Source of the DNA: Oopsacas minuta
Taxonomy: Eukaryota; Animalia; Porifera
Length of the DNA: 64,000 nt
NCBI GenBank assembly: GCA_024704765.1
Contig: JAKMXF010000343.1
Location: 806,001 to 870,000, forward strand
Direction: 5' to 3'
Under the pieces are notes generated by a model, which saw only the letters and a program-made list of their open reading frames with translations, did not search any database and was not told where the DNA came from. The position numbers were made by a program, and so were the translations under genes. Shown piece by piece: positions 12,542 through 56,505 of this stretch (position 1 is the stretch's first letter; each line of letters starts with the position of its first letter).

Positions 12542-14705
12542 CACAGGTCAAAAAAAATATTTCTATCTCTTGGCTCAGATTGTTGGAGTGTTTTTAGGGT
12601 ATATCGGGGTTGCTATATCCGAAAGTACTATTAGTTTTGCTGAATTAGCTCTAGTTTTCTAGATATTACACAACCTTAAATTTGAAGGTAATACTACAAA
12701 TATTTTCGGTTTGTATGTTTATATCAACATTTAAAACTATTTGTCCACAACATAGAACCTTTTATGGATTCAAAACGCATTAGACGTTGTTGCCTCAATG
12801 ATCCCGATGTCTTTCGCTATATTTGTGGTGAATATATGGCAAAGGAATATCGTCTTAATATTAGAGATATCAGCAAAATAGCTTATCAAGCTTACTTTGG
12901 TTTAAATTAAGCGATCAGGATAAGTCATGGCGCCCTCACAAAGTGTACAAATATTGCATAGAAACCCTCCGCCTATGGACCCAAGGAAAAGCCAAATCCA
13001 TGAAGTTTGGGGTACCAATGGTTTGGCGAGAGCCCAAGAACCATCATGATGATTGCTACTTCTGCATGGTTAAAATGTCTGGATGGAACCAGCAGAAAAG
13101 AATTCGTGGCATTATACTGACATACATTCTGCAAGACGCCCAATTCCACACTGCAGCGAAATTCAGGTGCCTGTTTTTACATCCTTAGCTGATACTGCGT
13201 TTACTGAGGCAATTGATGAATCGTCGGACAGCATTTACAGCAGCAATAGCTGTAATGAGTTGTTACAAATAAGTAAAGCGGAGCCTTTCACACAGGGGCA
13301 GCTCGACGACTTAGTGAGAGACTTAGGCTTGTCAAAAGATGCTTCAGAGTCCTGGCTTCCCTTCTCAGCGAACACCATGTTCTCCACAGTGAAGCTAGGA
13401 TAACTTATTACCGACGCAGAGGCGAAGAACTTATTCGCTATTTCAGTGAAGAAGGCGGTTTCGTGTTTTGTAATAACATCCCAGGACTTCATTCAGCAAT
13501 TGGACTGTCCCAATACAATCCAAGTGAGTGGCGTTTATTTATCGACAGCTCTAAACGGAGTCTAAAGTGCGTGTTGCTGCATAATGGTAACAAATTTGCC
13601 TGTGTTCCGATGTGACATTCAGTAATCTTGAAAGAGCACTATGCAACTGTAAAGATGGTCCTACAAAAGCTGTGTTATGATGAACACAACTGGATCGCGT
13701 GTGTGGACTTGAAAATGGTCAATATCCTGCTAGGACAGCAAAGTGGTTACACTAAATACCCATGCTTTCTTTGTTTGTGGGACAGCAGGGCGGATGAGGT
13801 GCACTGGGAAAAGAAGAACTGGCCAGTTTGTCAAAAGATTGTCGTTGGGGAAAAGAATATCATTAATGAGCCAATAGTTAGCCGTGACTGTATCATCCTA
13901 CCACCACTACATATCAAGTTGCGACTGATGAAACAATTCGTAAAGGCATTGAACAAAGATGGTACCTGTTTCAATTACCTCTGCTCAGTATATCGTGGTC
14001 TGAGTATCGAAAAACTTAAAGCAGGAATTTTTGATGGGCCACAAATCAGAAACTGATAAAAGATGAAGAATTCGCCTCACACATGACTGGAGTTGAGGCT
14101 GCCGCGTGGTATTCCTTTGTTGATGTTGTAAAGGGATTGTTAGGCAACACCAAAGTGGCTAACTACCATAATCTGGTCAAAGGCATGCTCAAGAACTTCC
14201 ACAGTCTGGGAACCAGAATGAGCATAAAACTCCACTATCTCTATAGTCATTTAGAGAGATTCCCTGAAAATCTTGGTGATTTAGCGAAGAACAGGGCGAG
14301 CGATTCCACCAAGATATCAGGACTATGGAGAAACGGTACCAAGGAAGATGGGATGCTCACATGTTGGCAGATTACTGCTGGAGCCTTATGCGTGATTGCC
14401 CCCAAGAACCTCACAAGAGGAATTCGTATAAGAGAACATTCGTTCATGATTGATAAGTATTCAGATTATGTTATATCTCAAATTATCTGCTTCTTACGTA
14501 CGTTCAATTCTAGTTATAAGGTAATACATACATACTATATGGTATCAGTGAACACAGATTCACGGATGCTGAAAAACATAATTTTACAATATCACGAAAA
14601 GTAGAGCCAATTGACCAGAACTAGTGCCATTTTTGAACTCAGTGACCCCGATATACCCTAGAAATAGTTTCAACTTATCAGCCAAGAAAATGTTGTTGGC
14701 CAGTG
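12542..14705 (+). mobile_element. Chapaev3-like (CMC superfamily) transposon, defective
   Basis: CACAGG...CCAGTG termini with long imperfect TIRs (shared TAGGGTATATCGGGGT) and a 3-bp TTA duplication (12539-41, 14706-08). Protein fragments: FCYICGE, PMVWREPKNHHDDCYFC, FIDSSKRSLK, GQQSGYTKYPCFLC, PPLHIKL, MSIKLHYL. Confidence 0.8.
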
Positions 14706-17049: not shown

Positions 17050-18387
17050 CAGGGTGTAACAAAAATATTGTTGTTTTATATCATGAATCAAACGTAAGCA
17101 AAATACTACAATTATTACATTATTATTTCCCAATATAGTCTCCTTGTCTTTCTAATACGAGTGCTACTCGCCTGGGCATACTGGAGACCATATTTGCAAA
17201 ACATCTCCTGAAATACCACTCCATGCCTTTTCCAAATTTTTGACGAGGTTATTCATGGTGCTTGCTTGCTCAAACTCTTCCACTTTGTCTTTCAGTATTG
17301 ACCATAAGTTATCAATGTGATTGAGGTCAGGTGAGTTCCAAGCGATTCCGCTTTCTGCCAAAACGCTGGAAGATTCTGTTTGCACCATTCTTGCGTTAGT
17401 TTGGCCGTATGAGCGGGAGCCCCGTCTTGCATAAAAATTATCTCGGACATCTTTGAAGTCGTGGCCCGCTGTAAAACCGATCCATTTTTTGCTCTTCTAT
17501 CGATTGCATCTTTGCAAGATCCAGCCAAAATCTTCGTACGATAGTACTCTCCATTAATAGTTTGCCTCTGAGGTATAACATGCAACTTAGATAGGGCTTG
17601 GTGAGGCATCATGCCCCAAACTTGAATTTTCGCAGGAAATTTTATCTTTGTGCAGGGTTCGATTGAACCAGAATCCTTGCTCCAACCGCGGTCATTCTGT
17701 ATGTTTGTGGTAGGAAACAATTCGAATGGAGATTCATCCGACCACAGAACTATATTCCAATCCTCTACAGTCCAACCTTGTGTTTCTGCGGAAATTCGAT
17801 CTGGTTTTTCTTCATTTTCAAGGTCAATCGCGGCCTTTTCGGCCTTTTAAATGGCGCAGTATCTAGAGACTTTCTCAAATACGATGTACAAAGGTGTGAG
17901 AGATATCACAACCCCTTCTCGTTAATCTCAGAGCTAGCTTTCGTGTAGATTGCCTTCTCTTCCCCAAAGACTTTGCTATGACATTTTCGCAACTCTATCA
18001 ATTTTCGGCGGACGTCCAGAATTAGGCTTTGATTCTATTGGAAATCCCAATTTATCGTTACGCCCCTATCTCTGAACTGATCAAATGTTGACATTCAACA
18101 CTTGAGCAACCTTTTTAGGCATTTCTCCTGCTTTAAGCATCCCCAATGCCTGAGATCCTAAAGATAATCCGTAATCCTGGACATTCATATCACAACAATT
18201 AGGTAAAAATTTCCAAAATGACGAAAAGAATTCCAAAATATATTAATGTAAGATTTGACTTCACTCGAGTTTAACTAAGCAATATAAAACATATTTACTG
18301 AGAGAAATCAATAGCGAGGATTGCATACGAATGTGGAATTTGAATTCATGTATATTAAAATGACGACAATACTTTTGTTACACCCTG
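17050..18387 (-). mobile_element. Tc1/mariner DD37E-family element, degenerate
   Basis: TA duplication and 26-bp TIRs CAGGGTGTAACAAAA. ATG at 18188 (MNVQDYGLSLGSQALGMLKAG). Fragments VWSDESPF, FMQDGAPAHTAK and NSPDLN are collinear with the 356-aa ORF at 19001. Confidence 0.9.
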
Positions 18388-18799
18388 TATTGTGTAGTCT
18401 AGATTCGTACTGCTATCTAGTAATTTGTATAGAATAACATATGTTTTTCACGAATTTCAAAAAAATATTTTCGATTTACACTTTTTGAAGGTGTTAATTA
18501 TTATTAATTATTGGATAATTATTGATAATCAAAATATGTGGTAATTCAAAGCCTATTCAGAATCTATAATTTGACTTGATATTTGAATTCTACGTAGGCG
18601 AGTTACCCCAGATGGAAATTTCCAATCGGATTGAACAATTTTTACCAGAGTTATAGATGAACTTCAATTTGTGCCATTTGTGCCACCTTTTGCCCAAGGT
18701 GGTACAAGTGGCCGCTACCAAGAGGTTATTTTGTAATTCAAGGGTTAGCATAGTCATATCATTTGAATATATTACTTCGACTTATTCCTCCTAACCCTA

Positions 18800-20145
18800 C
18801 AGGGTGTTTCAAAAGTCTTGGTACCTATTCTAATGAAACCATCTATCTAGTTCATCAATGTAAATACTGTTAGATCTGAGTACTATCTTATTATAATGTC
18901 AGTTCAAGTATTCTAACGCATTATTCACCCTAATACCTTATATATTGTCGATAATCACAATTTTTTTTCGTTTTTTTTGTAATTCGTAAACACTAGAATA
19001 ATGAATGTCGGAGATCATGGAATTGCAGTCCGTTCTAAAGCAATAGGGATGCTGGAAGCTGGTGTATCACAGAAAGATGTTGCTCTGAGGTTAGGTGCTG
19101 GATTACGTTCCATTAAAAGATGGTGGGCAGCAGCTAAATGTGGTCATTCATTGGAGACAAAGGCAAGGTTTGGCCGTCCGAAAACTCTAAATCGGGCCGC
19201 TAAGATAGTAATAGCGAAATCTTTGGAGAAACGAAGACATTCAACCCGAAATATAGCCAAGAGCTTAGCCGAAAAGGGCTATTCTGCTTCTTTTTCGACT
19301 GTCTATCGACATCTGACAAAAAGTCTTGGTGCTAGAGCATTCAAACGGCCCCAAATCCCGCGAATTACTGAAAGGATCAAGGGAAATTGGCTTTTGTTCG
19401 CCCACAAGCATAAGAATTGGACTACTGAAGATTGGAGAAAGGTTCTTTGGTCGGACGAATCGCCCTTCGAACTATTTTCAACACCAAATCGACAGAACGA
19501 TAGAGTGTGGAGCAAAAATGGCAAAGATATCAGCCCAGTTTTCAAGGTGAAATTTCCTGCTAAAGTCATGGTATGGGGCATGATGTCATACCGTGCCTTG
19601 TCAGAAATGCACATAATTCCTCAAAAGCAATCTGTAGACGCAGCATATTACCGTGATAATATACTAGGAGTTACTTGTCTTGATGCCATTAGCCGTTCTT
19701 CTAAAACAGGTAGCATTGTGGAAAGATCAATGTTGTTAAACATGTCGGATTTTTTATTCATGCAGGACGGTGCTCCAGCACACACGGCTAAAGCTACGCA
19801 AGAATGGTGCACAAACAATTTCCCCCGCTTTTGGAAGAAAGGCGAGTGGCCAGCCAACTCTCCTGACCTAAATCCTATCGAGAATTTATGGTCTATATTA
19901 GCTGATAGAGTGGATAAGTTAGGTCAAGTTAACACAATTGATAACCTAATTCAGAACCTCAAATTGGCCTGGATCAGTATTGATGTGGATATTTTAAATA
20001 ATTTAGTTAGTGGCATGTCTGATAGGATTAGAAAAGTAATAGAATTGCATGGTGATTATATTGGCCAATAAAATCGATAGTGTGTGTATGATATGTAGTA
20101 TATAATTTACGTTACTCGAGGTGCCAAGACTTTTGAAACACCCTG
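18800..20145 (+). mobile_element. Tc1/mariner DD37E element, apparently intact
   Basis: TA duplication and 27-bp TIRs CAGGGTGTTTCAAAAGTCTTGG(T/C)ACCT (26/27 identical). It contains a single uninterrupted ORF. Confidence 0.95.
19001..20071 (+). CDS. DD37E transposase, 356 aa
   Basis: N-terminal HTH region. Catalytic motifs WSDES, MQDGAPAH and SPDLNPIEN, with 37 residues between D2 and E. Confidence 0.93.
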   Translation: MNVGDHGIAVRSKAIGMLEAGVSQKDVALRLGAGLRSIKRWWAAAKCGHSLETKARFGRPKTLNRAAKIVIAKSLEKRRHSTRNIAKSLAEKGYSASFSTVYRHLTKSLGARAFKRPQIPRITERIKGNWLLFAHKHKNWTTEDWRKVLWSDESPFELFSTPNRQNDRVWSKNGKDISPVFKVKFPAKVMVWGMMSYRALSEMHIIPQKQSVDAAYYRDNILGVTCLDAISRSSKTGSIVERSMLLNMSDFLFMQDGAPAHTAKATQEWCTNNFPRFWKKGEWPANSPDLNPIENLWSILADRVDKLGQVNTIDNLIQNLKLAWISIDVDILNNLVSGMSDRIRKVIELHGDYIGQ

Positions 20146-20741
20146 TAGTTGATTTCCTTGTTGTGGCGCTTTTTCCTGCCACTTGTGTCACTTTTTTCAA
20201 GAAGAGGCACAAGTGGCACAAATTGAAAGTCTTTTATAGCTTTGGTAAAATTGTTCAATCACATTGAAAATTTTAATCTAGGGTAACTCGCACATGTAGA
20301 ATTCAAATATCAAGTCATAAATTATTGATTCTTAATAGGTTTTGAACTACCACATATTTTGATTATTAATAATTATCTAATCGTTATTAATAATGAACAC
20401 CTTCAAAAAGTGTAAATCGAAATTATTTTTTGAAATTCTTGACAAACATATATTATTCTATGCAAATTACTAGATAGCAGCTACGAATATAGACTACACA
20501 ATATATAGGAGCGGGAAAGAGATACAATTTATGACATTATATTGGTGTGTTCGAATACGTTTGTCCCCTGACTGTATATATTTGAGTATTTCTTACATAA
20601 ACATAATTTCATAGACTGTATTTGTGAGAAATTTATGTATGTATAAAGTATTCTTAAGATGTAAAAAGAGGCATAAGAACAATTAATTGGTTGTCAAAAA
20701 ATATTCACTTTGAAAGTCTAGTAACTACGCCAAATATAATA

Positions 20742-44991: not shown

Positions 44992-46298
44992 GTCTATATG
45001 GTAATTCAAAGAACTAACTAATATTATTATTACAGTATTATAAATAATGATATCTATAAATCCTTATATATATCATAAATGAGGATGCTTTGACCAATCT
45101 GGTTTGCTTTAGCCCAAATATTGAACATTTCAAAAGTTTTTATTTGATTCAGGATTAATTTCAAATAAATTTTTAGATGATTACACAAAAATTGGAGAAT
45201 TAAAAACTGTATATTTTTTGAAATTTGGATATTAATCAAGGCAAGAATTGACAGATTCACTAAGAAAAGCTGCATAGCTCTAAGAGAAGAAGCTCTAATA
45301 ATTTGGATAGATAATATATTCATACACTTCTGCTATCCTTTTGAATACGAAGAATTTAGTGCTGAAGATATCAGCACTAAATTGAACATCGAATAGCGAA
45401 CATAGGTCTATCGTAATTTCATATACAATTAAATCAATTGGTGAGTATGTTGTTAGCGTTGCGCAGCGACATAGAAAGCTGAGATTCATATACAATGGGC
45501 TAATAGGACAAAATGACGATTTAAAATTCAAACCAGATGCTATTCTGCACACCTAGCAAGTTCACAGGCTTGTCAGTCAGCCACCCACCTTTAGAATGCT
45601 TGAAGGACGTGGAACATTGTCAATCTTGAGAAAGCTAGTATGATTACAAATAAGATATAACAGAAAACAATACAAATTGATGATGTACCTGTCACATTGT
45701 ATCGTTGTTGGCTCCTAGAAAAATAAGAGATAAATATACAAAGAATGAATCAGGTGAATGCCATAGGAGAAATGGAACGCATTTGGAATTGTCGATTTCC
45801 TTCTCTATGAACCAGGTTGCATTGCAATCAGGGTATTATCTAAGCGGGTGCGGCGCGGCTATAGTAGCATGAAGGAAGTAGATCTATAGGTGTACGAAAA
45901 TTGGACAAGATACCTATGTAGAAAGTCATGATAATTATATCGTTAAGACATATAGTCAGGTGGTAGAACTTTTTAGAAGGTGAGTAACTTCATCGAAGTT
46001 CAGGGCTGTGATGTGCACTCAGTTCATGTGTCAATTTTGGACACAATTTCAAGGTGTTAAATGAATATAAGTCAACGAGTTTGAATCGAAACAGATGTAT
46101 ACTCGTAATCAGTGAAAGATTTCACGTCGTTTGAATGGCCACTTGAAAATGTTAAATAGTTTGTCACAGCAACACAGAACTATCTCATGGATGTGACAAC
46201 ATTCCATCCCCCAATTTTGTGAAAAAATAATCGATTTACCCATTATTCGAAGCAGCAGGGTTAGTTGAGCTAATTATGCATATATCTACACCATAAAT

Positions 46299-48843
46299 CA
46301 GGAGGCCCCAAACTGCAGCCCGCAAAAGCCTAATATGCGTCCCGCCAAAGAATATTGGCCAATTGAAATATTTAGCTCTTCGTCCATTTACACTTTTGTT
46401 GGAAGCTAATCTATAGTTGACTGATAGAAATAATTATTTGTTTTCGACGCTTTTAAGCTGACAATATCATATTAGAAGCCTAAAACTTATTAGAAAGGAT
46501 TCTGTTCTTTCAATTTCATATTTATATCTAATTGCTATCAATTTTCTGATTCCACAAAATTTAGAAAGTACAAATATAGAATGTCAATCCCGAAAAAGTG
46601 AAAAATCGAGGAAGAACATCGAGGATTTAAAGATAGATGGACAGAAACTTATTTTTGTATACAAAATAGAGATAAAAGTGTCTTGTTTGATTTGCAATGA
46701 GGCAATTTCGGTTTTTAAAGAGCGTAACATTCGTAAGCATTACGATACAAAGCTTAAAGTAGATTACGAGCAATTTACAGAAAACCTACGTGCAGGTAAT
46801 ATTACAACACATTTTATCAGTACAGAGGTAGCGGAAACAGTTCAAATGTTTTTGTTCATGCTTGTCTGACCTTTCAGTGTGCACCGCCCCTGTAGTAGAT
46901 ATCGGATAAATGTGCACCGCTTCTAGCGTGGAATTAGTACATAGTAAAGTAGTAACTTAATGTCTGAGTGCAATATATTATAACCGACTTTCCCTCTCTA
47001 CTCTGAGTGTTTTAGTTTAAAGTACAATGTTTTATCAATTTTCTTTCTTAGACAAACTCGAATATTTAAAAAGGAATCGATTATCTCAAATGAACTTATT
47101 CAAAAAGAAAGTGAATGAAGATTCTGCCACTATTTTTGCGACATATTATGTGTCACAGATTATTGCACAAAGTAGTAAACCGTTTTGCGATGGCGAATAT
47201 GTTGAAAAATGCTTACTCAAAGTGGTGGATTGTATATGTCCTGACAAAATGAATTTGTTCGAGGCTGTAAGTTTGTCTGCTAGCATTGTTACACGACGTA
47301 TGGAAGAAATAAGTGACAATCTACGATCACAGTTGTTGAACGTTAAAGATAAATTTGAACGTTTTTCAATTGGGTTAGACGAAAGTTGTGATGTGAGTGA
47401 TACAAGTCAACTTCTAGTTTTTATACGTGGTATTGACAAAGACTTCCATATAACTGAAGAATTAGCTGCTCTACATAGCTTGAAAGGGACTACAACAGGA
47501 CATGATGTTTTCGAAAAACTTCATGAAACATTACGATCCCTGAATCTAGATTGGAAGAAACTCACATCCATTACAACAGATGGGGCCAAAAGTATGGTTG
47601 GAAGGAAGATTGGATTAATTGGACGAATAAATAATCATATGGAGGATGTTGGTACGAATTTTCCCATCGCCCTTCACTGTCTCATTCACCAACAAGCGCT
47701 TTGTGCAAAATCACTTGACTTGGACTGTGTGATGAAGACAGTATTTAAAACAGTAAATTATATCCGTGCACATGCTCTGAACCATCGTCAATTTCAGAGT
47801 TTTTCGAAGGAGGTAGACACAGATTATGACGATGTAATCTACCACAGTGAAGTACGTTGGCTTAGCCGTGGTAAAGTTTGAAGCGATTCTTTGAGCTACG
47901 TAAAGAAAGAGATTATTTCATGACTACAAAGGGGCGTCCAGTAGGTGAACTGTCTGATGGCAAATGGGTATGGCAGCTTGCATTTCTAGCGGATGTCACA
48001 CAGCACCTTAATGATCTCAACTTACGGCTTCAGGGGAAAGGGAAGCTAGTCAATCAAATGTTTTATGACGTTAAATCCTTTGATTCAAAATTATGCCTTT
48101 TTGAAAAAGAACTTTCAACAAGCAATTTGACGCTTTTTAAACTATGCCAATTGTCAAGAATGATGTATCAGTTACCATACCATTTCCCGAATCATGGGCA
48201 AAGATTGCCATTGAATCACTCAAAGAACAGTTCAAACGACGATTTGAAGATTTTTATGCATACTCAAAGGATATTTTAATGTTTGCAGATCCATTTATTG
48301 TTGATGTGGAGGGACTTTGGGAGGATCTGCAATTAGAAATCATAGATCTGCAGTCAAATAACGATCTTAGGTAAAAACTTAGAGAGTTGTTCGCACTGCA
48401 ATTTTATCATACTCTGCCTTCAAGTATTTTCCCGAATGTTTGTGCCCTTGCCATGCGAATGGCTGCTTTATTCGGCAGTACTTATATTTGCGAACAAACC
48501 TTTCCAGAATGAAAATCGTGAAATCCAAAACTCAGTCACGATTGACTGATGGACACCTACATGATTTGCTTCGCCTCAGTGTTTCAAATTTGATTGTAGA
48601 AATAGACCAATTGGTGAAAAGTAAACAGGCTCAGATCGCCAAATGATACTCAACATATAGTTATAATTACAATGGTGTGTCTTGTAATTGATAATAGTCA
48701 ATTAAAATTAGATTATTTAAAGCTGGGTTAAAAAGAAAATGTATATCTATCTGCAGTTGAAATATTATATTATTAGTGTTGCGACCGCGAACAAGTTCAT
48801 ATAACTAATGTGGCCCTCGATTGAGAAAGGTTGGGGACCCCTG
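46299..48843 (+). mobile_element. hAT transposon, SPIN/GTF2IRD2-like, copy 1 (intron-containing, defective)
   Basis: TIRs CAGG(A)G(G)CCCCAA / TTGGGGACCCCTG. ATG at 46581 with an early TGA and frameshifts. Motifs GLDESCD, ITTDGA, LHCLIHQQAL, YHSEVRWLSRG and FGSTY.CEQ. Confidence 0.92.
46796..47051 (+). other. Putative 256-bp phase-1 spliceosomal intron in the hAT transposase (mirrored at 52618-52363)
   Basis: CAG|GTAATA...TTTTCTTTCTTAG|AC. Splicing fuses the ORFs at 46678 and 47027 in frame: ENLRA-D-KLEYLKR. Confidence 0.75.
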
Positions 48844-48851
48844 CCCTATAC

Positions 48852-49191
48852 AAGGTCACCTGTACAAAACGGGCACTTAAAACATTCCCCTTCGAATTTC
48901 TATTTTTTACAGTGTTCCCAAATTCCTGACCTCATTACTTTGAACTATTGCAAACCCATCATGACTGTCCAAAACCTCAAAATTCTCAATATTTCGGGAT
49001 ATTTTTTCTAATTTCTTAATACCAGAAGTTAGAATTTCTTAATGACACGATGTATGTATGTATGTATGTGTGTATATAATTCCAGAATTGAATGAAGAAA
49101 CTGAAAACCCGCAGGGCTGATTTTGTATAAAGGAGATATAATTGAAATATTGACCACCGAGCACTATCAAATGAAATTGTACCTTATGTTC
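48852..49191. other. 340-bp spacer inverted between the two hAT copies
   Basis: Flanked by CCCTATAC (48844-51) and ATTTATGG (49192-99), the reverse complements of the outer flanks GTATAGGG (53116-23) and CCATAAAT (46291-98). Confidence 0.85.
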
Positions 49192-49385
49192 ATTTATGGC
49201 AGGGGTCCCCAACCTTTCTCAATCGAGGGCCACATTAGTTATATGAACTTGTTCGCGGTCGCAACACTAATAATATAATATTTCAACTGCAGATAGATAT
49301 ACATTTTCTTTTTAACCCAGCTTTAAATAATCTAATTTTAATTGACTATTATCAATTACAATACACACCATTGTAATTATAACTA

Positions 49386-50754
49386 CAGTATGTCCAATAA
49401 TTATTGCAACACTAGGGAGATTTCTTAGCGTAACCCAGAAACAATAAATATGAAAGTATATGATCTAATTTTATGTCTACTTGTTGAGAATACACTAAAG
49501 ATTAATATTTGATCTTATTTCCATCGTTTTCTACGACCATCTGACATCTACGCTTCATAGACTTCCAATAGGGTTCCAAAAATTCGGGTGTGAGAGAATC
49601 CCAAATTGTTTGGATACACTTTTCAAGCTCAGCTAGTGATTTGGCATGTTGTTTTACAACTTGATTTTTCAACCAGCCGAATAGATTTTCTATCGGATTA
49701 AGGTCTGGTGATTGACTGAGCCATTGAAATACATTATTTGGCATTTTTTCTGAGATCCATTGTTGGGCTAATTTTGAACGGTGCTTTGGATCATTATCCT
49801 GAACGAGAAACCATCTATTTCCGTGGAAAGCCTCAGCCTGCGAAAGAAGATGCCATTCAAGGATCTTAACAAAGAATTGTGCATCCAAATTCTGACGAAA
49901 TATGCACAATGGGAAGGTACCGAAAGACGAAAATGCAGCCCATATGTGTATTTTCGGTGAGTGTTTGGTAGTTTTTTGTGATCGTTTTTTTCCAGATTTT
50001 GTCCACATTCGAACCTTCCCACGATTAAGCCAGAAAGAGGCTTCATCTGCAAACACAGCTCTACACCACAGTTTAAATTTGTTTTTCTGTGCCCATTCAA
50101 TTCTGAAGAGACGATTTTTTTTCAGATAGCAATGGAATCTGGACAGGAAATGGCTTAGAGTATTTCAGTTTCTGAAGAGTAAGATGGACTGTACTTTTAC
50201 TGACAGTCAGTTTCTTTGTTTTAGTTATCCTGGTTGTAAGTTTACGTACACTAGTCTCTGGATCCGATTTGATGAACTGAGTAGCTGTATATTTTATTGA
50301 ATTGCCGAGTAAATTTGGTCTACCACCGCCTCTTTTGTGTTTAAGGGTCATATTTGTTTGGAGCCTTTTTTTAACCCTGTAAACTGTCCCTCGATCAACA
50401 TCTAAAATGCGTGAGATTTCAGTAGGTGTATGTTTATCGCCAATCAATAGAGTTTTGATCTTTTCTCTCATCACCTCTTGAGCCATATCAACGCTAAATG
50501 CTAAATTATTCAGCTAAAAGGTAAGAGAATTTTCTAATTTATGATGAAAGGTACTAAATGATGACGTCATGGTAAATAATGACGTCATCCTCATTAGCAA
50601 AAAATATAATCCCATTGTGTTTACTCAGATTTATCTTCAAATAGATACCAATTAACTTTCAATATTAGTACAGTAACTACTACTTATCAACTAGAACTAT
50701 AGCAGTGGTTGAAATAGAAATAATGATGTGTTGCAATAATTATTGGACATACTG
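49386..50754 (-). mobile_element. Tc1-like DD35E element, one frameshift
   Basis: Perfect 27-bp TIR CAGTATGTCCAATAATTATTGCAACAC with TA duplication. ORFs 50486-50097 (HTH) and 50056-49502 (FADEASF, VQDNDPKH, SPDLNPIEN; 35 aa between D and E). The break falls at a T8 run near 50115. Confidence 0.92.
50561..50588. promoter_or_regulatory. Two CRE/ATF-type palindromes upstream of the Tc1 ORF
   Basis: ATGACGTCAT at 50561-70 and 50579-88, 75-100 bp upstream of the ATG at 50486. Confidence 0.4.
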
Positions 50755-53302
50755 TATATGTTGAGTATCATTTGGCGATCTGAGCCTGTTTACTTTTCAC
50801 CAATTGGTCTATTTCTACAATCAAATTTGAAACACTGAGGCGAAGCAAATCATGTAGGTGTCCATCAGTCAATCGTGACTGAGTTTTGGATTTCACGATT
50901 TTCATTCTGGAAAGGTTTGTTCGCAAATATAAGTACTGCCGAATAAAGCAGCCATTCGCATGGCAAGGGCACAAACATTCGGGAAAATACTTGAAGGCAG
51001 AGTATGATAAAATTGCAGTGCGAACAACTCTCTAAGTTTTTACCTAAGATCGTTATTTGACTGCAGATCTATGATTTCTAATTGCAGATCCTCCCAAAGT
51101 CCCTCCACATCAACAATAAATGGATCTGCAAACATTAAAATATCCTTTGAGTATGCATAAAAATCTTCAAATCGTCGTTTGAACTGTTCTTTGAGTGATT
51201 CAATGGCAATCTTTGCCCATGATTCGGGAAATGGTATGGTAACTGATACATCATTCTTGACAATTGGCATAGTTTAAAAAGCGTCAAATTGCTTGTTGAA
51301 AGTTCTTTTTCAAAAAGGCATAATTTTGAATCAAAGGATTTAACGTCATAAAACATTTGATTGACTAGCTTCCCTTTCCCCTGAAGCCGTAAGTTGAGAT
51401 CATTAAGGTGCTGTGTGACATCCGCTAGAAATGCAAGCTGCCATACCCATTTGCCATCAGACAGTTCACCTACTGGACGCCCCTTTGTAGTCATGAAATA
51501 ATCTCTTTCTTTACGTAGCTCAAAGAATCGCTTCAAACTTTACCACGGCTAAGCCAACGTACTTCACTGTGGTAGATTACATCGTCATAATCTGTGTCTA
51601 CCTCCTTCGAAAAACTCTGAAATTGACGATGGTTCAGAGCATGTGCACGGATATAATTTACTGTTTTAAATACTGTCTTCATCACACAGTCCAAGTCAAG
51701 TGATTTTGCACAAAGCGCTTGTTGGTGAATGAGACAGTGAAGGGCGATGGGAAAATTCGTACCAACATCCTCCATATGATTATTTATTCGTCCAATTAAT
51801 CCAATCTTCCTTCCAACCATACTTTTGGCCCCATCTGTTGTAATGGATGTGAGTTTCTTCCAATCTAGATTCAGGGATCGTAATGTTTCATGAAGTTTTT
51901 CGAAAACATCATGTCCTGTTGTAGTCCCTTTCAAGCTATGTAGAGCAGCTAATTCTTCAGTTATATGGAAGTCTTTGTCAATACCACGTATAAAAACTAG
52001 AAGTTGACTTGTATCACTCACATCACAACTTTCGTCTAACCCAATTGAAAAACGTTCAAATTTATCTTTAACGTTCAACAACTGTGATCGTAGATTGTCA
52101 CTTATTTCTTCCATACGTCGTGTAACAATGCTAGCAGACAAACTTACAGCCTCGAACAAATTCATTTTGTCAGGACATATACAATCCACCACTTTGAGTA
52201 AGCATTTTTCAACATATTCGCCATCGCAAAACGGTTTACTACTTTGTGCAATAATCTGTGACACATAATATGTCGCAAAAATAGTGGCAGAATCTTCATT
52301 CACTTTCTTTTTGAATAAGTTCATTTGAGATAATCGATTCCTTTTTAAATATTCGAGTTTGTCTAAGAAAGAAAATTGATAAAACATTGTACTTTAAACT
52401 AAAACACTCAGAGTAGAGAGGGAAAGTCGGTTATAATATATTGCACTCAGACATTAAGTTACTACTTTACTATGTACTAATTCCACGCTAGAAGCGGTGC
52501 ACATTTATCCGATATCTACTACAGGGGCGGTGCACACTGAAAGGTCAGACAAGCATGAACAAAAACATTTGAACTGTTTCCGCTACCTCTGTACTGATAA
52601 AATGTGTTGTAATATTACCTGCACGTAGGTTTTCTGTAAATTGCTCGTAATCTACTTTAAGCTTTGTATCGTAATGCTTACGAATGTTACGCTCTTTAAA
52701 AACCGAAATTGCCTCATTGCAAATCAAACAAGACACTTTTATCTCTATTTTGTATACAAAAATAAGTTTCTGTCCATCTATCTTTAAATCCTCGATGTTC
52801 TTCCTCGATTTTTCACTTTTTCGGGATTGACATTCTATATTTGTACTTTCTAAATTTTGTGGAATCAGAAAATTGATAGCAATTAGATATAAATATGAAA
52901 TTGAAAGAACAGAATCCTTTCTAATAAGTTTTAGGCTTCTAATATGATATTGTCAGCTTAAAAGCGTCGAAAACAAATAATTATTTCTATCAGTCAACTA
53001 TAGATTAGCTTCCAACAAAAGTGTAAATGGACGAAGAGCTAAATATTTCAATTGGCCAATATTCTTTGGCGGGACGCATATTAGGCTTTTGCGGGCTGCA
53101 GTTTGGGGACCCCTGGTATAGGGGGTGGCCGTTAGGCAGGTTTGGTAGTATACACACATACCCACAGATTAAATGTGTTCAAATAGCTTTTGAGTCGTAT
53201 TGCTTCAAGTTCTGTTTACCTAAATTTGTCCTCCGAAAAATGAATTTATGAATTTATGAATTTAGCGCATTATTTGGACTGTAGCATCTCTTTGATATAC
53301 AT

Positions 53303-56300
53303 TAGGCCGGATCGAGAAAAGTATAAATCGTCGGTTCAACTTCTACCTATGGGAATTGTTGCCTTTACCATTTTCTAGGAAAATGCGAGACTTAAATTTG
53401 AAAAATATTTCGATTTGACCCTTGCGGTTTTATATTTTTGCTGTGTCACTTTCGAAAATTGATTTTATATTGTCCGAATTTTCAAATTCCTTTGACTTAG
53501 CCCCTTTATATATATTATTTGGTAATAGTAAGTCGCATATTTGCTATTGAATGGTATATTAATCGAATTTCTATGTCCAAGGATACTTAAGTTATCAAGA
53601 TTTCTTTTGCATATTCTATCATACCCCAATATTATTACCCACCCCCCTTTTTTCCGATTATTTGAAAATTATTAGCTTTTTTATCTATCGTGGTATATGA
53701 TTCAATTATGTTATATCAAGTATATTTAACATGCATAATCTTTCTTTGACTCAAATGCGGGCATTTTTTCTCTTGATGTTAGGGTTGAAAGAATTAATCC
53801 ATGTCTCGCATCTTCTCCTGTTACTGAACACGAACTTTTAGTGACTAATTGAATAGTTCTTTCAACAGCTTGTGTATGATATGGATATGCTTGAATTTCT
53901 AGTGGAGTACGTACACAATTAATTAGTACTTCTTTTGAGAGGTATCTTGTAAAAGCGGTTCTGTGATAAAAGAGGTTTCCCAATCAATCATATCCACATA
54001 TGTTTCAGCAGTGAACCTAATTGAAGGAAGATTAAATGGGCGAATTTCAATCGGTCTAAATGATGAACTGTTAATTCGGATATCTAAAATAGTCTTCACT
54101 GCCTTTTGTCTAATTTGTTCATCATTATCTGCAAGCATCGATAACAGGAGATTTTCTGGATGACAAAAATATGAGTTTCTCTGTATCACATCGCAAATTA
54201 CTTCTTGGTCAGACTCCGGTAGATCTGGTAGCAAAGATATCGCAAAAAACATATTTTTAGGTCCATCTGTGCAAATCGGGTTACTCTTGATTCTAAACCA
54301 AACTGGTGCATAATAATTGACAATAAAATTGACAAGTCGGGATAATTCAGGTGTGGGATGTATCGTAGAAATGTACGACCTAAGTAATCTGTTGACCAGT
54401 GTTGTCCATCTAGCATGATGTATAGGACCAGGTTGCATCGATGCCAGTTCAGATGAGCAAATACCAGTCTGAACTGCATGGCAGATATTATATAGATATT
54501 TCTGATCTTTATTTAAATTCTTGAGACTATCGTAATCAATAAGTTGAGTTTTACCGCATAAAGGATGATACGCTGCAATTGGTTTGCAAGTAAAATCACA
54601 ATTAAGTTCTTTACCAATTACTCCTTTAAAAGAATTGGGTCCACTGGTTTTTCCATCTATTATTTGAAAGAGATGCCTCAATGGAAGTTCATTACCATGT
54701 AATTGGCAAATAAACCAGTGGAGTGGTTTTGCGAACTCTAGTTCAAGTAATCTAATACACCCATTGTAGATTCCAGTGTTAACACGAGCTCCATCAGCTC
54801 CAACCGCCATTAAATTTGAATTACGCTCCCTGCAAAGATCAGTCAATTCCTTTGCTATATCTTTGGCTTTACCAGAACTTGGTGTTATATGGCCAACATA
54901 CTGATTCTCCGGTTCAGATAAGACAGTATAATGTTCTTCATTTGCAGTATCCTGATGCAAATGTCCATCTTCTCTTTCTACCAGTACTCGAGTTTTGATC
55001 TTTACGGCCATCAAAATATGTTGCAGATATATCATTGATAGTTTCGTGAGCCTCATTAGCCAATTCCTTTCTCACAGAGAATCTAGATCTATGGAGTTTG
55101 TTTCTATCAATAATTTGACTATCTTCTTCCTGTGTGATACTACCGTAATCTTGCAGTACTGCGTTAGCTATAGCTGCGCCTGCCCGATCGCTAATTTGAT
55201 ATCTATCACACATTATGGCTAAATTTCGTAATTGATTATGATTACGTGTATACTTGTGAGTATTAGATATGCTCGAGTCAAAAGATTCAAACTCTTCAAA
55301 GTCACATTCTATAAATTCTTGCGAAGGTTGAACTGCATGTAATCTCTTCATTTCCCTTTCTTCTCTTTCATATTGTGCCTCTTTTCTTTTTTGTTTAACA
55401 AAATTTTTAGAGGTTGTCATGCAGTCCAAGCTGGATATAAATAATTTTCGAGCGTTTCGCTGATCAAAGAGAAATGGCCACTCACGGCGTGGTATCTTTT
55501 TATCGAGAGAGCAAAAACATTTACCTTCCTGAATTAGGCATTTGCAACTTGAGACATCGAACAAGACATTGAATTCGGAAATAATAGGCTGTATACGGTC
55601 AGGTTGTTGCTTGTTTTGGATACTTTTTCCATAGTATTTAGCTCTCTCAATAATATCAGAATTGATGTACTGTTTTATTTTGAGTTCTGATATAGTGGGT
55701 ATGGAAGCCAAATTATAGATACGCACTAATACTTCAGTTAGTTCTTTCGCTATATCATCTCTAGTTGATTTAGAATCTTCATTTCTAAGCATTCTATAAT
55801 GATTGTATAGATCTAGTTTTGTTGGAATTTGATTTTCTGGAATGGGTCCTGGATAGCCAAAAATAGGATGAAATACTTTACTACGCGTGTTTTCTGCCAT
55901 TTCAAAAATAAATATATTTTAGGAATATGATCACTCAATAATATGAATGATTTGATCGAGCATTGATATAGATACTATAATTGACCATAAATTCCATGCT
56001 AGATAAATGGTAACTAAGTTAGAACAAGAGATAAGGAATGTTGGCAAAATTTCTTTGTGGTAACCTATTGAGGAATTTGGATCTAGATAAAGAAATATAC
56101 TAAGTTTGGTGATTATATAGCTAGTTTTACTAAGAATATAGAATTTTCAAATAATCGGAAAAAAGGGGGGTAATAATATTAGGGTATGATAGAATATGCA
56201 AAAGAAATCTTGATAACTTAAGTATCCTTGGACATAGAAATTCGATTAATATACCATTCAATAGCAAATATGCGACTTACTATTACCAAATAATATATAT

Positions 56301-56505
56301 AAAGGGGCTAAGTCAAAGGAATTTGAAAATTCGGACAATATAAAATCAATTTTCGAAAGTGACACAGCAAAAATATAAAACCGCAAGGGTCAAATCGAAA
56401 TATTTTTCAAATTTAAGTCTCGCATTTTCCTAGAAAATGGTAAAGGCAACTTTTCCCATAGGTAGAAGTTGAACCGACGATTTATACTTTTCTCGATCCG
56501 GCCTA
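53303..56505 (-). mobile_element. Long-TIR hAT-like (hATm-type) transposon, two frameshifts
   Basis: TAGG termini, about 365-bp nearly identical TIRs, and 8-bp duplication ATATACAT (53295-302, 56506-13). ORFs 55900-54938, 55056-53923 and 53983-53726 carry YFDGRKD, GADGARVNTG, CQLHGNELPLRH (CxxH) and HTQAVER. The subgroup name is from memory. Confidence 0.78.

Follow-up and report, generated by a model that had tools for sequence, protein, structure and literature searches.

The window, i.e. the whole 64-kb stretch of Oopsacas minuta DNA that was analysed, carries two oppositely oriented copies of one defective hAT transposon. A repeat search of the window detected two inverted arm pairs, 46288-48659 / 50755-53126 and 48658-48848 / 49195-49385, parted in copy 2 by a segment that itself ends in 29-bp inverted repeats. 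Each copy is bounded by two different 8-bp sequences, and each of these recurs, as its reverse complement, at the other copy. Along the window the order is CCATAAAT[copy1]CCCTATAC - 340-bp spacer - ATTTATGG[copy2]GTATAGGG. This order, written A[copy1+]B - 340 bp - rc(A)[copy2-]rc(B), is exactly the one given, with the same positions, in a first-pass annotation of this DNA. The distance from element to element is 356 bp (340 bp for the spacer itself).

The swapped 8-bp flanks sit exactly at the TIR ends of both copies, and the computed chance of two 8-mers matching in such a swapped arrangement is approximately 2e-10. Homology between the copies ends exactly at the TIR tips, with the flanks outside the palindrome; therefore, the layout is not a fold-back palindrome.

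Features of the inverted hAT pair and its surroundings (positions in the 64-kb window)
Feature	Position	Strand	Remarks
Older repeat (family X) holding site A	45960-46298	+	Repeat copies elsewhere in the genome continue across A
8-bp target duplication A, CCATAAAT	46291-46298	+	Left of copy 1
hAT copy 1, defective, 2545 bp	46299-48843	+	Ends read and compared base by base with copy 2
8-bp target duplication B, CCCTATAC	48844-48851	+	Right of copy 1
Spacer, 340 bp	48852-49191	No strand	Inverted relative to the rebuilt empty site
rc(A), ATTTATGG	49192-49199	+	Adjoins the 3' end of copy 2
hAT copy 2, 2545 bp + 1371 bp (Tc1-like element and one extra TA)	49200-53115	-	
Tc1/mariner-type element, 1369 bp	49386-50754	-	29-bp TIRs; TA duplications at 49384-85 and 50755-56
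rc(B), GTATAGGG	53116-53123	+	Adjoins the 5' end of copy 2
Terminus of an older TA-flanked CAGT repeat (consensus CAGTCAAACCTGCTTAACGGCCACC)	53124-53148	-	Split from its continuation at 48852

The identity of the element was examined from its ends and its coding remnants. Copy 1 ends in CAGGAGGCCCCAA on the 5' side, where two changes are derived, and in CAGGGGTCCCCAA on the 3' side. In copy 2 the 5' TIR is the family consensus CAGGGGTCCCCAA, and the two ends match at 13 of 13 positions. This consensus TIR is short and has the CAG/TAG start of hAT elements. The target duplications are 8 bp long at A and B, and a family member elsewhere (L003) is flanked on both sides by CACTAAAG. A and B each match half of the hAT target consensus nTnnnnAn, a degree of agreement that is not informative. 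In a protein search, a 286-aa piece encoded at 47021-47878 matched 164 proteins, with E values down to 4e-95 for relatives outside this family. The matched proteins are named as GTF2IRD2-like, FAM200-like or SPIN-DOC-like zinc-finger proteins; they carry DUF4371 and several also carry PF05699. Three such proteins align along the element in frames 3, 2, 1 and 3, as far as position 2336, and the element therefore contains at least three frameshifts. Direct Pfam matches of the open pieces fell below the cut-off (PF18658, Spin-doc zinc finger, 1e-4; PF14291, DUF4371, 0.0053), as did the hAT dimerisation domain PF05699 on L003 (E 0.0098). Searches of PDB and NCBIfam with the transposase piece gave no matches. 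The C-terminal dimerisation domain and DUF4371-type core of a hAT-type transposase are recognised through the protein homologues. The intact catalytic residues of an autonomous element are lacking, given the three or more frameshifts and the fact that all family copies are broken. Because 8-bp duplications and transposase remnants occur together, we assign the element to the hAT superfamily and, within it, to the Charlie / GTF2IRD2-like group, as a defective member.

The family is small. The genome searches covered an assembly of 61,460,524 bases in 365 pieces, and the G+C content of the window is approximately 36%; the published assembly has 365 scaffolds, about 61 Mb and 36% G+C (PMC10280926). 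Besides the twins, three full-length copies (93-96.5% identity) and two fragments were found, and the copies are each broken in different places. The genome contains at least 139 other hAT-like matches, many with open frames of 400-632 aa. No autonomous partner of the twins' family was found among these matches, the intact ones being at most 44% identical.

The two copies were then compared base by base. They differ at 3 of 2545 positions (99.88% identity), a count to be taken as a lower bound in that the near-perfect identity of the arms may partly stem from graph collapse and polishing. The differences lie at element positions 5 and 7 (46303 and 46305 in copy 1, 53111 and 53109 in copy 2) and 2383 (48681 and 49362, respectively). 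Element positions 8-2361 (2354 bp) are identical in both copies, and the 3' ends are identical over 162 bp. The next relatives reach only 93-96.5%, and the twins are thus either very young or homogenised. As earlier noted from the sequence, only a few bases differ, and the two copies have the same stops and frameshifts because they are nearly identical (frames 3, 2, 1 and 3 when set against intact homologues). Using the other family copies as outgroups, the derived states were assigned to copy 1 at positions 5 and 7 and to copy 2 at position 2383.

If the 8-mers are target duplications, the sequence on either side of each should be continuous once the elements are removed. The rebuilt empty locus consists of the left flank, A, the reverse-complemented spacer, rc(B) and the right flank. 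At site B, the 21-mer adjoining rc(B), CAAACCTGCCTAACGGCCACC, has 58 matches in the genome at up to 3 mismatches, versus 0 for a control pattern. A direct DNA search with the sequence adjoining B returned only itself, and the family surfaced through the mismatch-tolerant pattern search. In 14 fetched copies, the 21-mer stands after TA-CAGT; past a gap of about 8 bases, ACGGTCACCTGCACATAGCGGCCACCTAAAAACAG...CCCTCCGATTTCCCAT follows. Other copies of the repeat likewise show the terminus, an 8-mer and then ACGGTCACCTGCACATAGCGGCCACC..., which matches the window from 48852 onward. At the present locus, this continuation lies on the opposite strand, 4.3 kb from the terminus, and the left 70-90 bp or so of the spacer continue the TA-CAGT repeat begun at 53124-53148 (-). 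Five independent repeat copies align straight across B in the rebuilt empty locus. Turning the spacer back thus rejoins the repeat terminus at B, as the first-pass annotation had proposed. Its term "pogo MITE" is not demonstrated: a TA-flanked CAGT terminus is seen in the 14 copies, but no inverted partner terminus was found within 1.5 kb at up to 4 mismatches.

The rejoining at A provides a second, independent line of evidence, in addition to the one at B already put forward. Of six fetched copies of the older repeat that holds site A (family X), five extend 26-75 bp past A, and they do so only when the spacer is turned back. Neither the present arrangement nor one that leaves the spacer unturned gave any extension. 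The right 26-75 bp or so of the spacer thus continue family X from 46298. As a control, 300 random 100-bp extensions were aligned at each junction and the summed alignment scores were compared. The observed scores were 231 at A (control maximum 210) and 448 at B (control maximum 341), and at either junction none of the 300 controls reached the observed value. A genome search with the left flank gave family X only, at up to 78% identity, and yielded no second allele, haplotig or paralogous empty site.

Because independent repeat copies cross both rebuilt junctions and none of the 300 controls does as well, we consider both 8-mers to be true target duplications, each present once in the rebuilt empty site, and the spacer of the assembly to be inverted relative to that site. 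One 5' end and one 3' end would have integrated in concert at each site. The reciprocal swap of target duplications claimed at the outset is borne out in this way, with both 8-mers at the exact TIR tips and both empty sites rebuilt.

The segment that interrupts copy 2 belongs to another superfamily. It encodes DDE_3 (PF13358, 5.5e-20) and HTH domains, including HTH_Tnp_Tc3_2. TA duplication, TIRs and DDE_3 with HTH, the marks of a Tc1/mariner element, are all present. It is inserted after hAT position 2361, in copy 2 only. Five other copies in the genome are at least 99% identical to it, and this Tc1-like family has therefore moved recently. The events at the locus can be placed in order. The hAT ends interrupt both older repeats, which therefore predate the hAT pair. 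The Tc1-like insert came last: it is confined to one twin, it is flanked by a TA duplication of its own, and its family includes copies of 99% identity or more. The same order was previously suggested (older repeat, hAT pair, Tc1 into copy 2), on the evidence of the cut repeats and of the insert confined to one twin.

We tentatively favour, with a probability of about 0.4, an origin in which a local hop created the inverted twins and these then recombined with each other. In this scheme, a defective hAT element, mobilised in trans, would have been present at one of two sites 340 bp apart. A short local hop, with the donor retained, would have placed a second, oppositely oriented copy at the other site. 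Homologous recombination between the 2.5-kb inverted copies would then flip everything between the crossover points, exchanging one 8-bp duplication per element and inverting the 340-bp spacer. Starting from A[E+]A - M - B'[E-]B', one crossover would give A[E+]rc(B') - rc(M) - rc(A)[E-]B'. The Tc1-like element would later have inserted in copy 2. Inversion by ectopic recombination is conventionally recognised by duplications that have been exchanged between copies in opposite orientation (PMC2775673), and the twins show both the opposite orientation and the exchanged target duplications. Two steps instead of one, and the correctness of the assembled order, are both inferred. Several points weigh against local hop and recombination. 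It needs a very short hop (340 bp) that keeps the donor, as well as a second event; a one-step model yields an identical product; and the pairing of flanks across 2354 identical bases is that of the assembly.

In the one-step model, called hybrid element insertion or sister-chromatid transposition, the element would first be replicated. Transposase would then pair its 5' end on one chromatid with the 3' end on the sister, and both ends would integrate into one of the two chromatids, 340 bp from the donor. The donor flanks would join to form a footprint chromatid, and the ends would integrate at B' on the fragment bearing the 5' end. One of the two possible orientations gives the observed molecule, A[E+]B..rc(A)[E-]rc(B), with an inverted duplicate, an inverted spacer and no loss; the other gives a deletion and a circle. 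The observed order was derived exactly from these cut-and-join steps, whichever site comes first. The sister-chromatid layout, with the old duplication on the outer, uncut ends and the new one on the cut ends, fits this derivation, as does the 99.88% identity of the twins. Moreover, the 8-bp duplication is clean at the TIR tips of both new junctions, a single event is more economical than three, and hAT elements are known for such behavior, as in Ac/Ds sister-chromatid transposition (10.1101/2020.01.07.897926). Both models give the same product, and either site could have been occupied first. Aberrant transposition and hop plus recombination, the two mechanisms offered in the first-pass annotation, indeed both predict exactly what is observed. 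The same equivalence was stated by Delprat et al., for whom the sole sequence criterion is whether the copies are chimeric (recombination) or identical (hybrid element insertion) (PMC2775673). Applied here, where the copies differ at only 3 positions, this criterion favours one step. All three derived changes and the Tc1-like insert lie on A-flanked ends; this fits one parental element bearing all of them and looks like chimerism of one mutated and one pristine parent, but about 1 in 4 is expected by chance, there are only 3 variant sites and both models predict the same distribution. Changes after the duplication fall at random in either model, and the comparison of chimeric with identical copies is therefore without power. 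No feature at the locus is unique to the one-step model, and the assembly contains no intact transposase of the twins' family (best intact relatives at most 44% identical). We regard it as rather unlikely. More specifically, we think it quite improbable that the locus records a single sister-chromatid (hybrid-end) hAT transposition in a glass sponge, which would be the first natural alternative-transposition footprint in a non-bilaterian animal.

Both of these mechanisms take the assembled order as given. Mis-pairing in the assembly could also create the swapped appearance from two ordinary hAT insertions with matching duplications at each, either because the identical 2354-bp arm was joined to the wrong 5' flank or because the spacer was flipped between the 162-bp identical 3' ends. 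The assembly was made with SPAdes on Illumina and Canu-corrected PacBio reads, followed by SSPACE, Pilon and GapFiller (PMC10280926). A de Bruijn graph collapses identical arms into one edge and, with positions 8-2361 identical, the pairing can be fixed only by a read or mate pair that exceeds about 2.4 kb. However, PacBio reads and Nextera mate pairs existed and normally span 2.4 kb, the window has no N runs, and SPAdes usually breaks contigs instead of guessing. Moreover, the Tc1 junction and the SNP at position 2383 are 184 bp and 163 bp from the spacer, respectively, so that ordinary read pairs can orient the spacer. Among possible artefacts, real copies with mis-paired arms or a flipped spacer are more likely than a false duplication. 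Because there are no N runs and PacBio reads normally span 2.4 kb, we think that assembly error is not the most likely reading, and we hold it to be doubtful. Finally, chance resemblance, or a fold-back replication error without transposase, has nothing beyond the palindromic layout in its favour. The TIR tips are directly abutted by two exact 8-mers (chance about 2e-10), the homology ends precisely with the TIRs and leaves the flanks outside the palindrome, and both empty sites were rebuilt from paralogs. On these grounds such an origin was rejected, its likelihood being negligible.

The phenomenon itself is already known, from P-element hybrid insertion, Galileo and Ac/Ds and, in form, from bacterial replicative inversion. 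In hybrid element insertion of P elements in Drosophila melanogaster, ends of sister copies insert near the donor and produce an inverted duplicate; the superfamily differs from that of the twins, and the process has been seen in experimental crosses. Intramolecular replicative transposition of bacterial IS/Tn elements ("adjacent inversion") leaves an inverted second copy, an inverted segment and a split new duplication. The product is identical to the twins, but the chemistry is truly replicative; hAT elements are cut-and-paste and mimic replicative inversion only through sister chromatids.

Recombination and hybrid element insertion have likewise been debated as mechanisms for the Galileo inversions 2j, 2q7 and 2z3 of Drosophila buzzatii (PMC2775673). 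Those inversions span megabases and are polymorphic; sequences of uninverted chromosomes were obtained, and the copies could be proved chimeric from many variant sites (PMC2775673). In contrast, the present case involves 340 bp, a hAT rather than a P superfamily element, one allele and only 3 variant sites. Sister-chromatid and reversed-ends transposition of Ac/Ds in maize concern the same hAT superfamily, with 8-bp duplications (PMC3744419, PMC8225341, 10.1101/2020.01.07.897926). As could be the case for the twins, ends from different copies are used together, resulting in inverted element duplications and inversions. In maize, however, the events were observed as they happened, together with their reciprocal products and footprints, whereas here the end product alone is seen. 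Most of them also involve Ac and a fractured Ac, and much larger segments than 340 bp.

If the arrangement is real, the locus would be an unusually clean record of a transposon-made rearrangement, with both empty sites recoverable, no sequence lost and four insertions that can be ordered in time. Rearrangements of this class are known from maize, snapdragon and Drosophila, and a hAT case from a sponge would join them. The 2.5-kb hairpin locus would moreover be a possible source of silencing RNAs; if transcribed, the hairpin could feed small-RNA silencing of the hAT family. Small-RNA silencing has been shown for Ac inverted duplications in maize (10.1101/2020.01.07.897926). The practical value of the locus is perhaps larger as a warning, as it tests the trust placed in the orientation of inverted repeats in the Oopsacas minuta assembly.

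Two of the three differences between the twins lie two bases apart in the 5' TIR of copy 1, where CAGGGGT has become CAGGAGG. At element positions 5 and 7, G and T are retained in every other copy of the family. The two changes may represent one multi-base mutation event in the quasi-palindrome GGGGTCCCC. The changed 5' TIR of copy 1 is probably disabled, which would leave copy 2 as the sole twin with two consensus ends.

The two near-identical defective hAT copies of the window, which lie in opposite orientation, differ at just three positions. Two of these, at 46303 and 46305, are two bases apart and fall in the 5' TIR of copy 1, which reads CAGGAGG versus CAGGGGT in the family. Both substitutions are derived; they are possibly a single mutational event in a quasi-palindrome, and have probably crippled this terminus. 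The hAT reading frame comprises a zinc-finger piece and a core piece. Fishes, amphibians, crustaceans and molluscs have GTF2IRD2-like proteins that share 50-60% identity with the core piece. This value is high for hosts so far apart, and might reflect horizontal spread. In the 61-Mb genome, hAT-transposase-like matches number at least 139, and many of them have retained open frames that span 400-632 aa.

Site A, the 8-bp target duplication to the left of copy 1, falls in an older repeat without a name, family X, for which at least 45 matches were found at 66-78% identity. Its continuation in the 340-bp spacer between the two hAT copies includes a (TGTA)n microsatellite, and a long array of the same microsatellite is present on another piece of the assembly (C11:410762-411015).

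Coordinates of the features in the window
Feature	Position	Remarks
hAT reading frame, zinc-finger piece	46462-46866	
hAT reading frame, core piece	47021-47878	
Gap separating the two hAT pieces	46796-47051	
Family X repeat	45960-46298 and 49050-49191	site A inside
Tc1-like reading frame, DDE_3 piece	49502-50056	184 aa
Tc1-like reading frame, HTH piece	50097-50486	129 aa
3203-bp element	53303-56505	immediately right of the hAT twins; terminal inverted repeats and 8-bp direct duplication
Inverted repeat pair	12568-12667 / 14588-14687	
Inverted repeat pair	17342-17454 / 19738-19850	
Inverted repeat pair	18410-18712 / 20178-20480	

The Tc1-like family of the insert in copy 2 (49386-50754) has been recently active. 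Six copies, including loci L085-L089 elsewhere in the genome, were recovered at 99% identity or more, with an additional set at 92-94%. The reading frame of the window copy is split in two pieces.

The 3203-bp element may represent a transposon whose transposase has yet to be described. Its terminal inverted repeats of approximately 340 bp begin TAGGCCGG, and the direct duplication, ATATACAT, is perfect (53295-302 and 56506-13). Two long ORFs (377 and 320 aa) are present on its minus strand, and a Pfam search with both returned no match, even at E 5. At least 40 matches to its ends, at 95-98% identity, were arranged in pairs about 3 kb apart, indicating at least 20 young copies. Finally, the three other inverted repeat pairs, with lengths of 61-113 nt, complementarity of 70-90% and spacings of 1.5-2.3 kb, resemble the termini of further TIR transposons.
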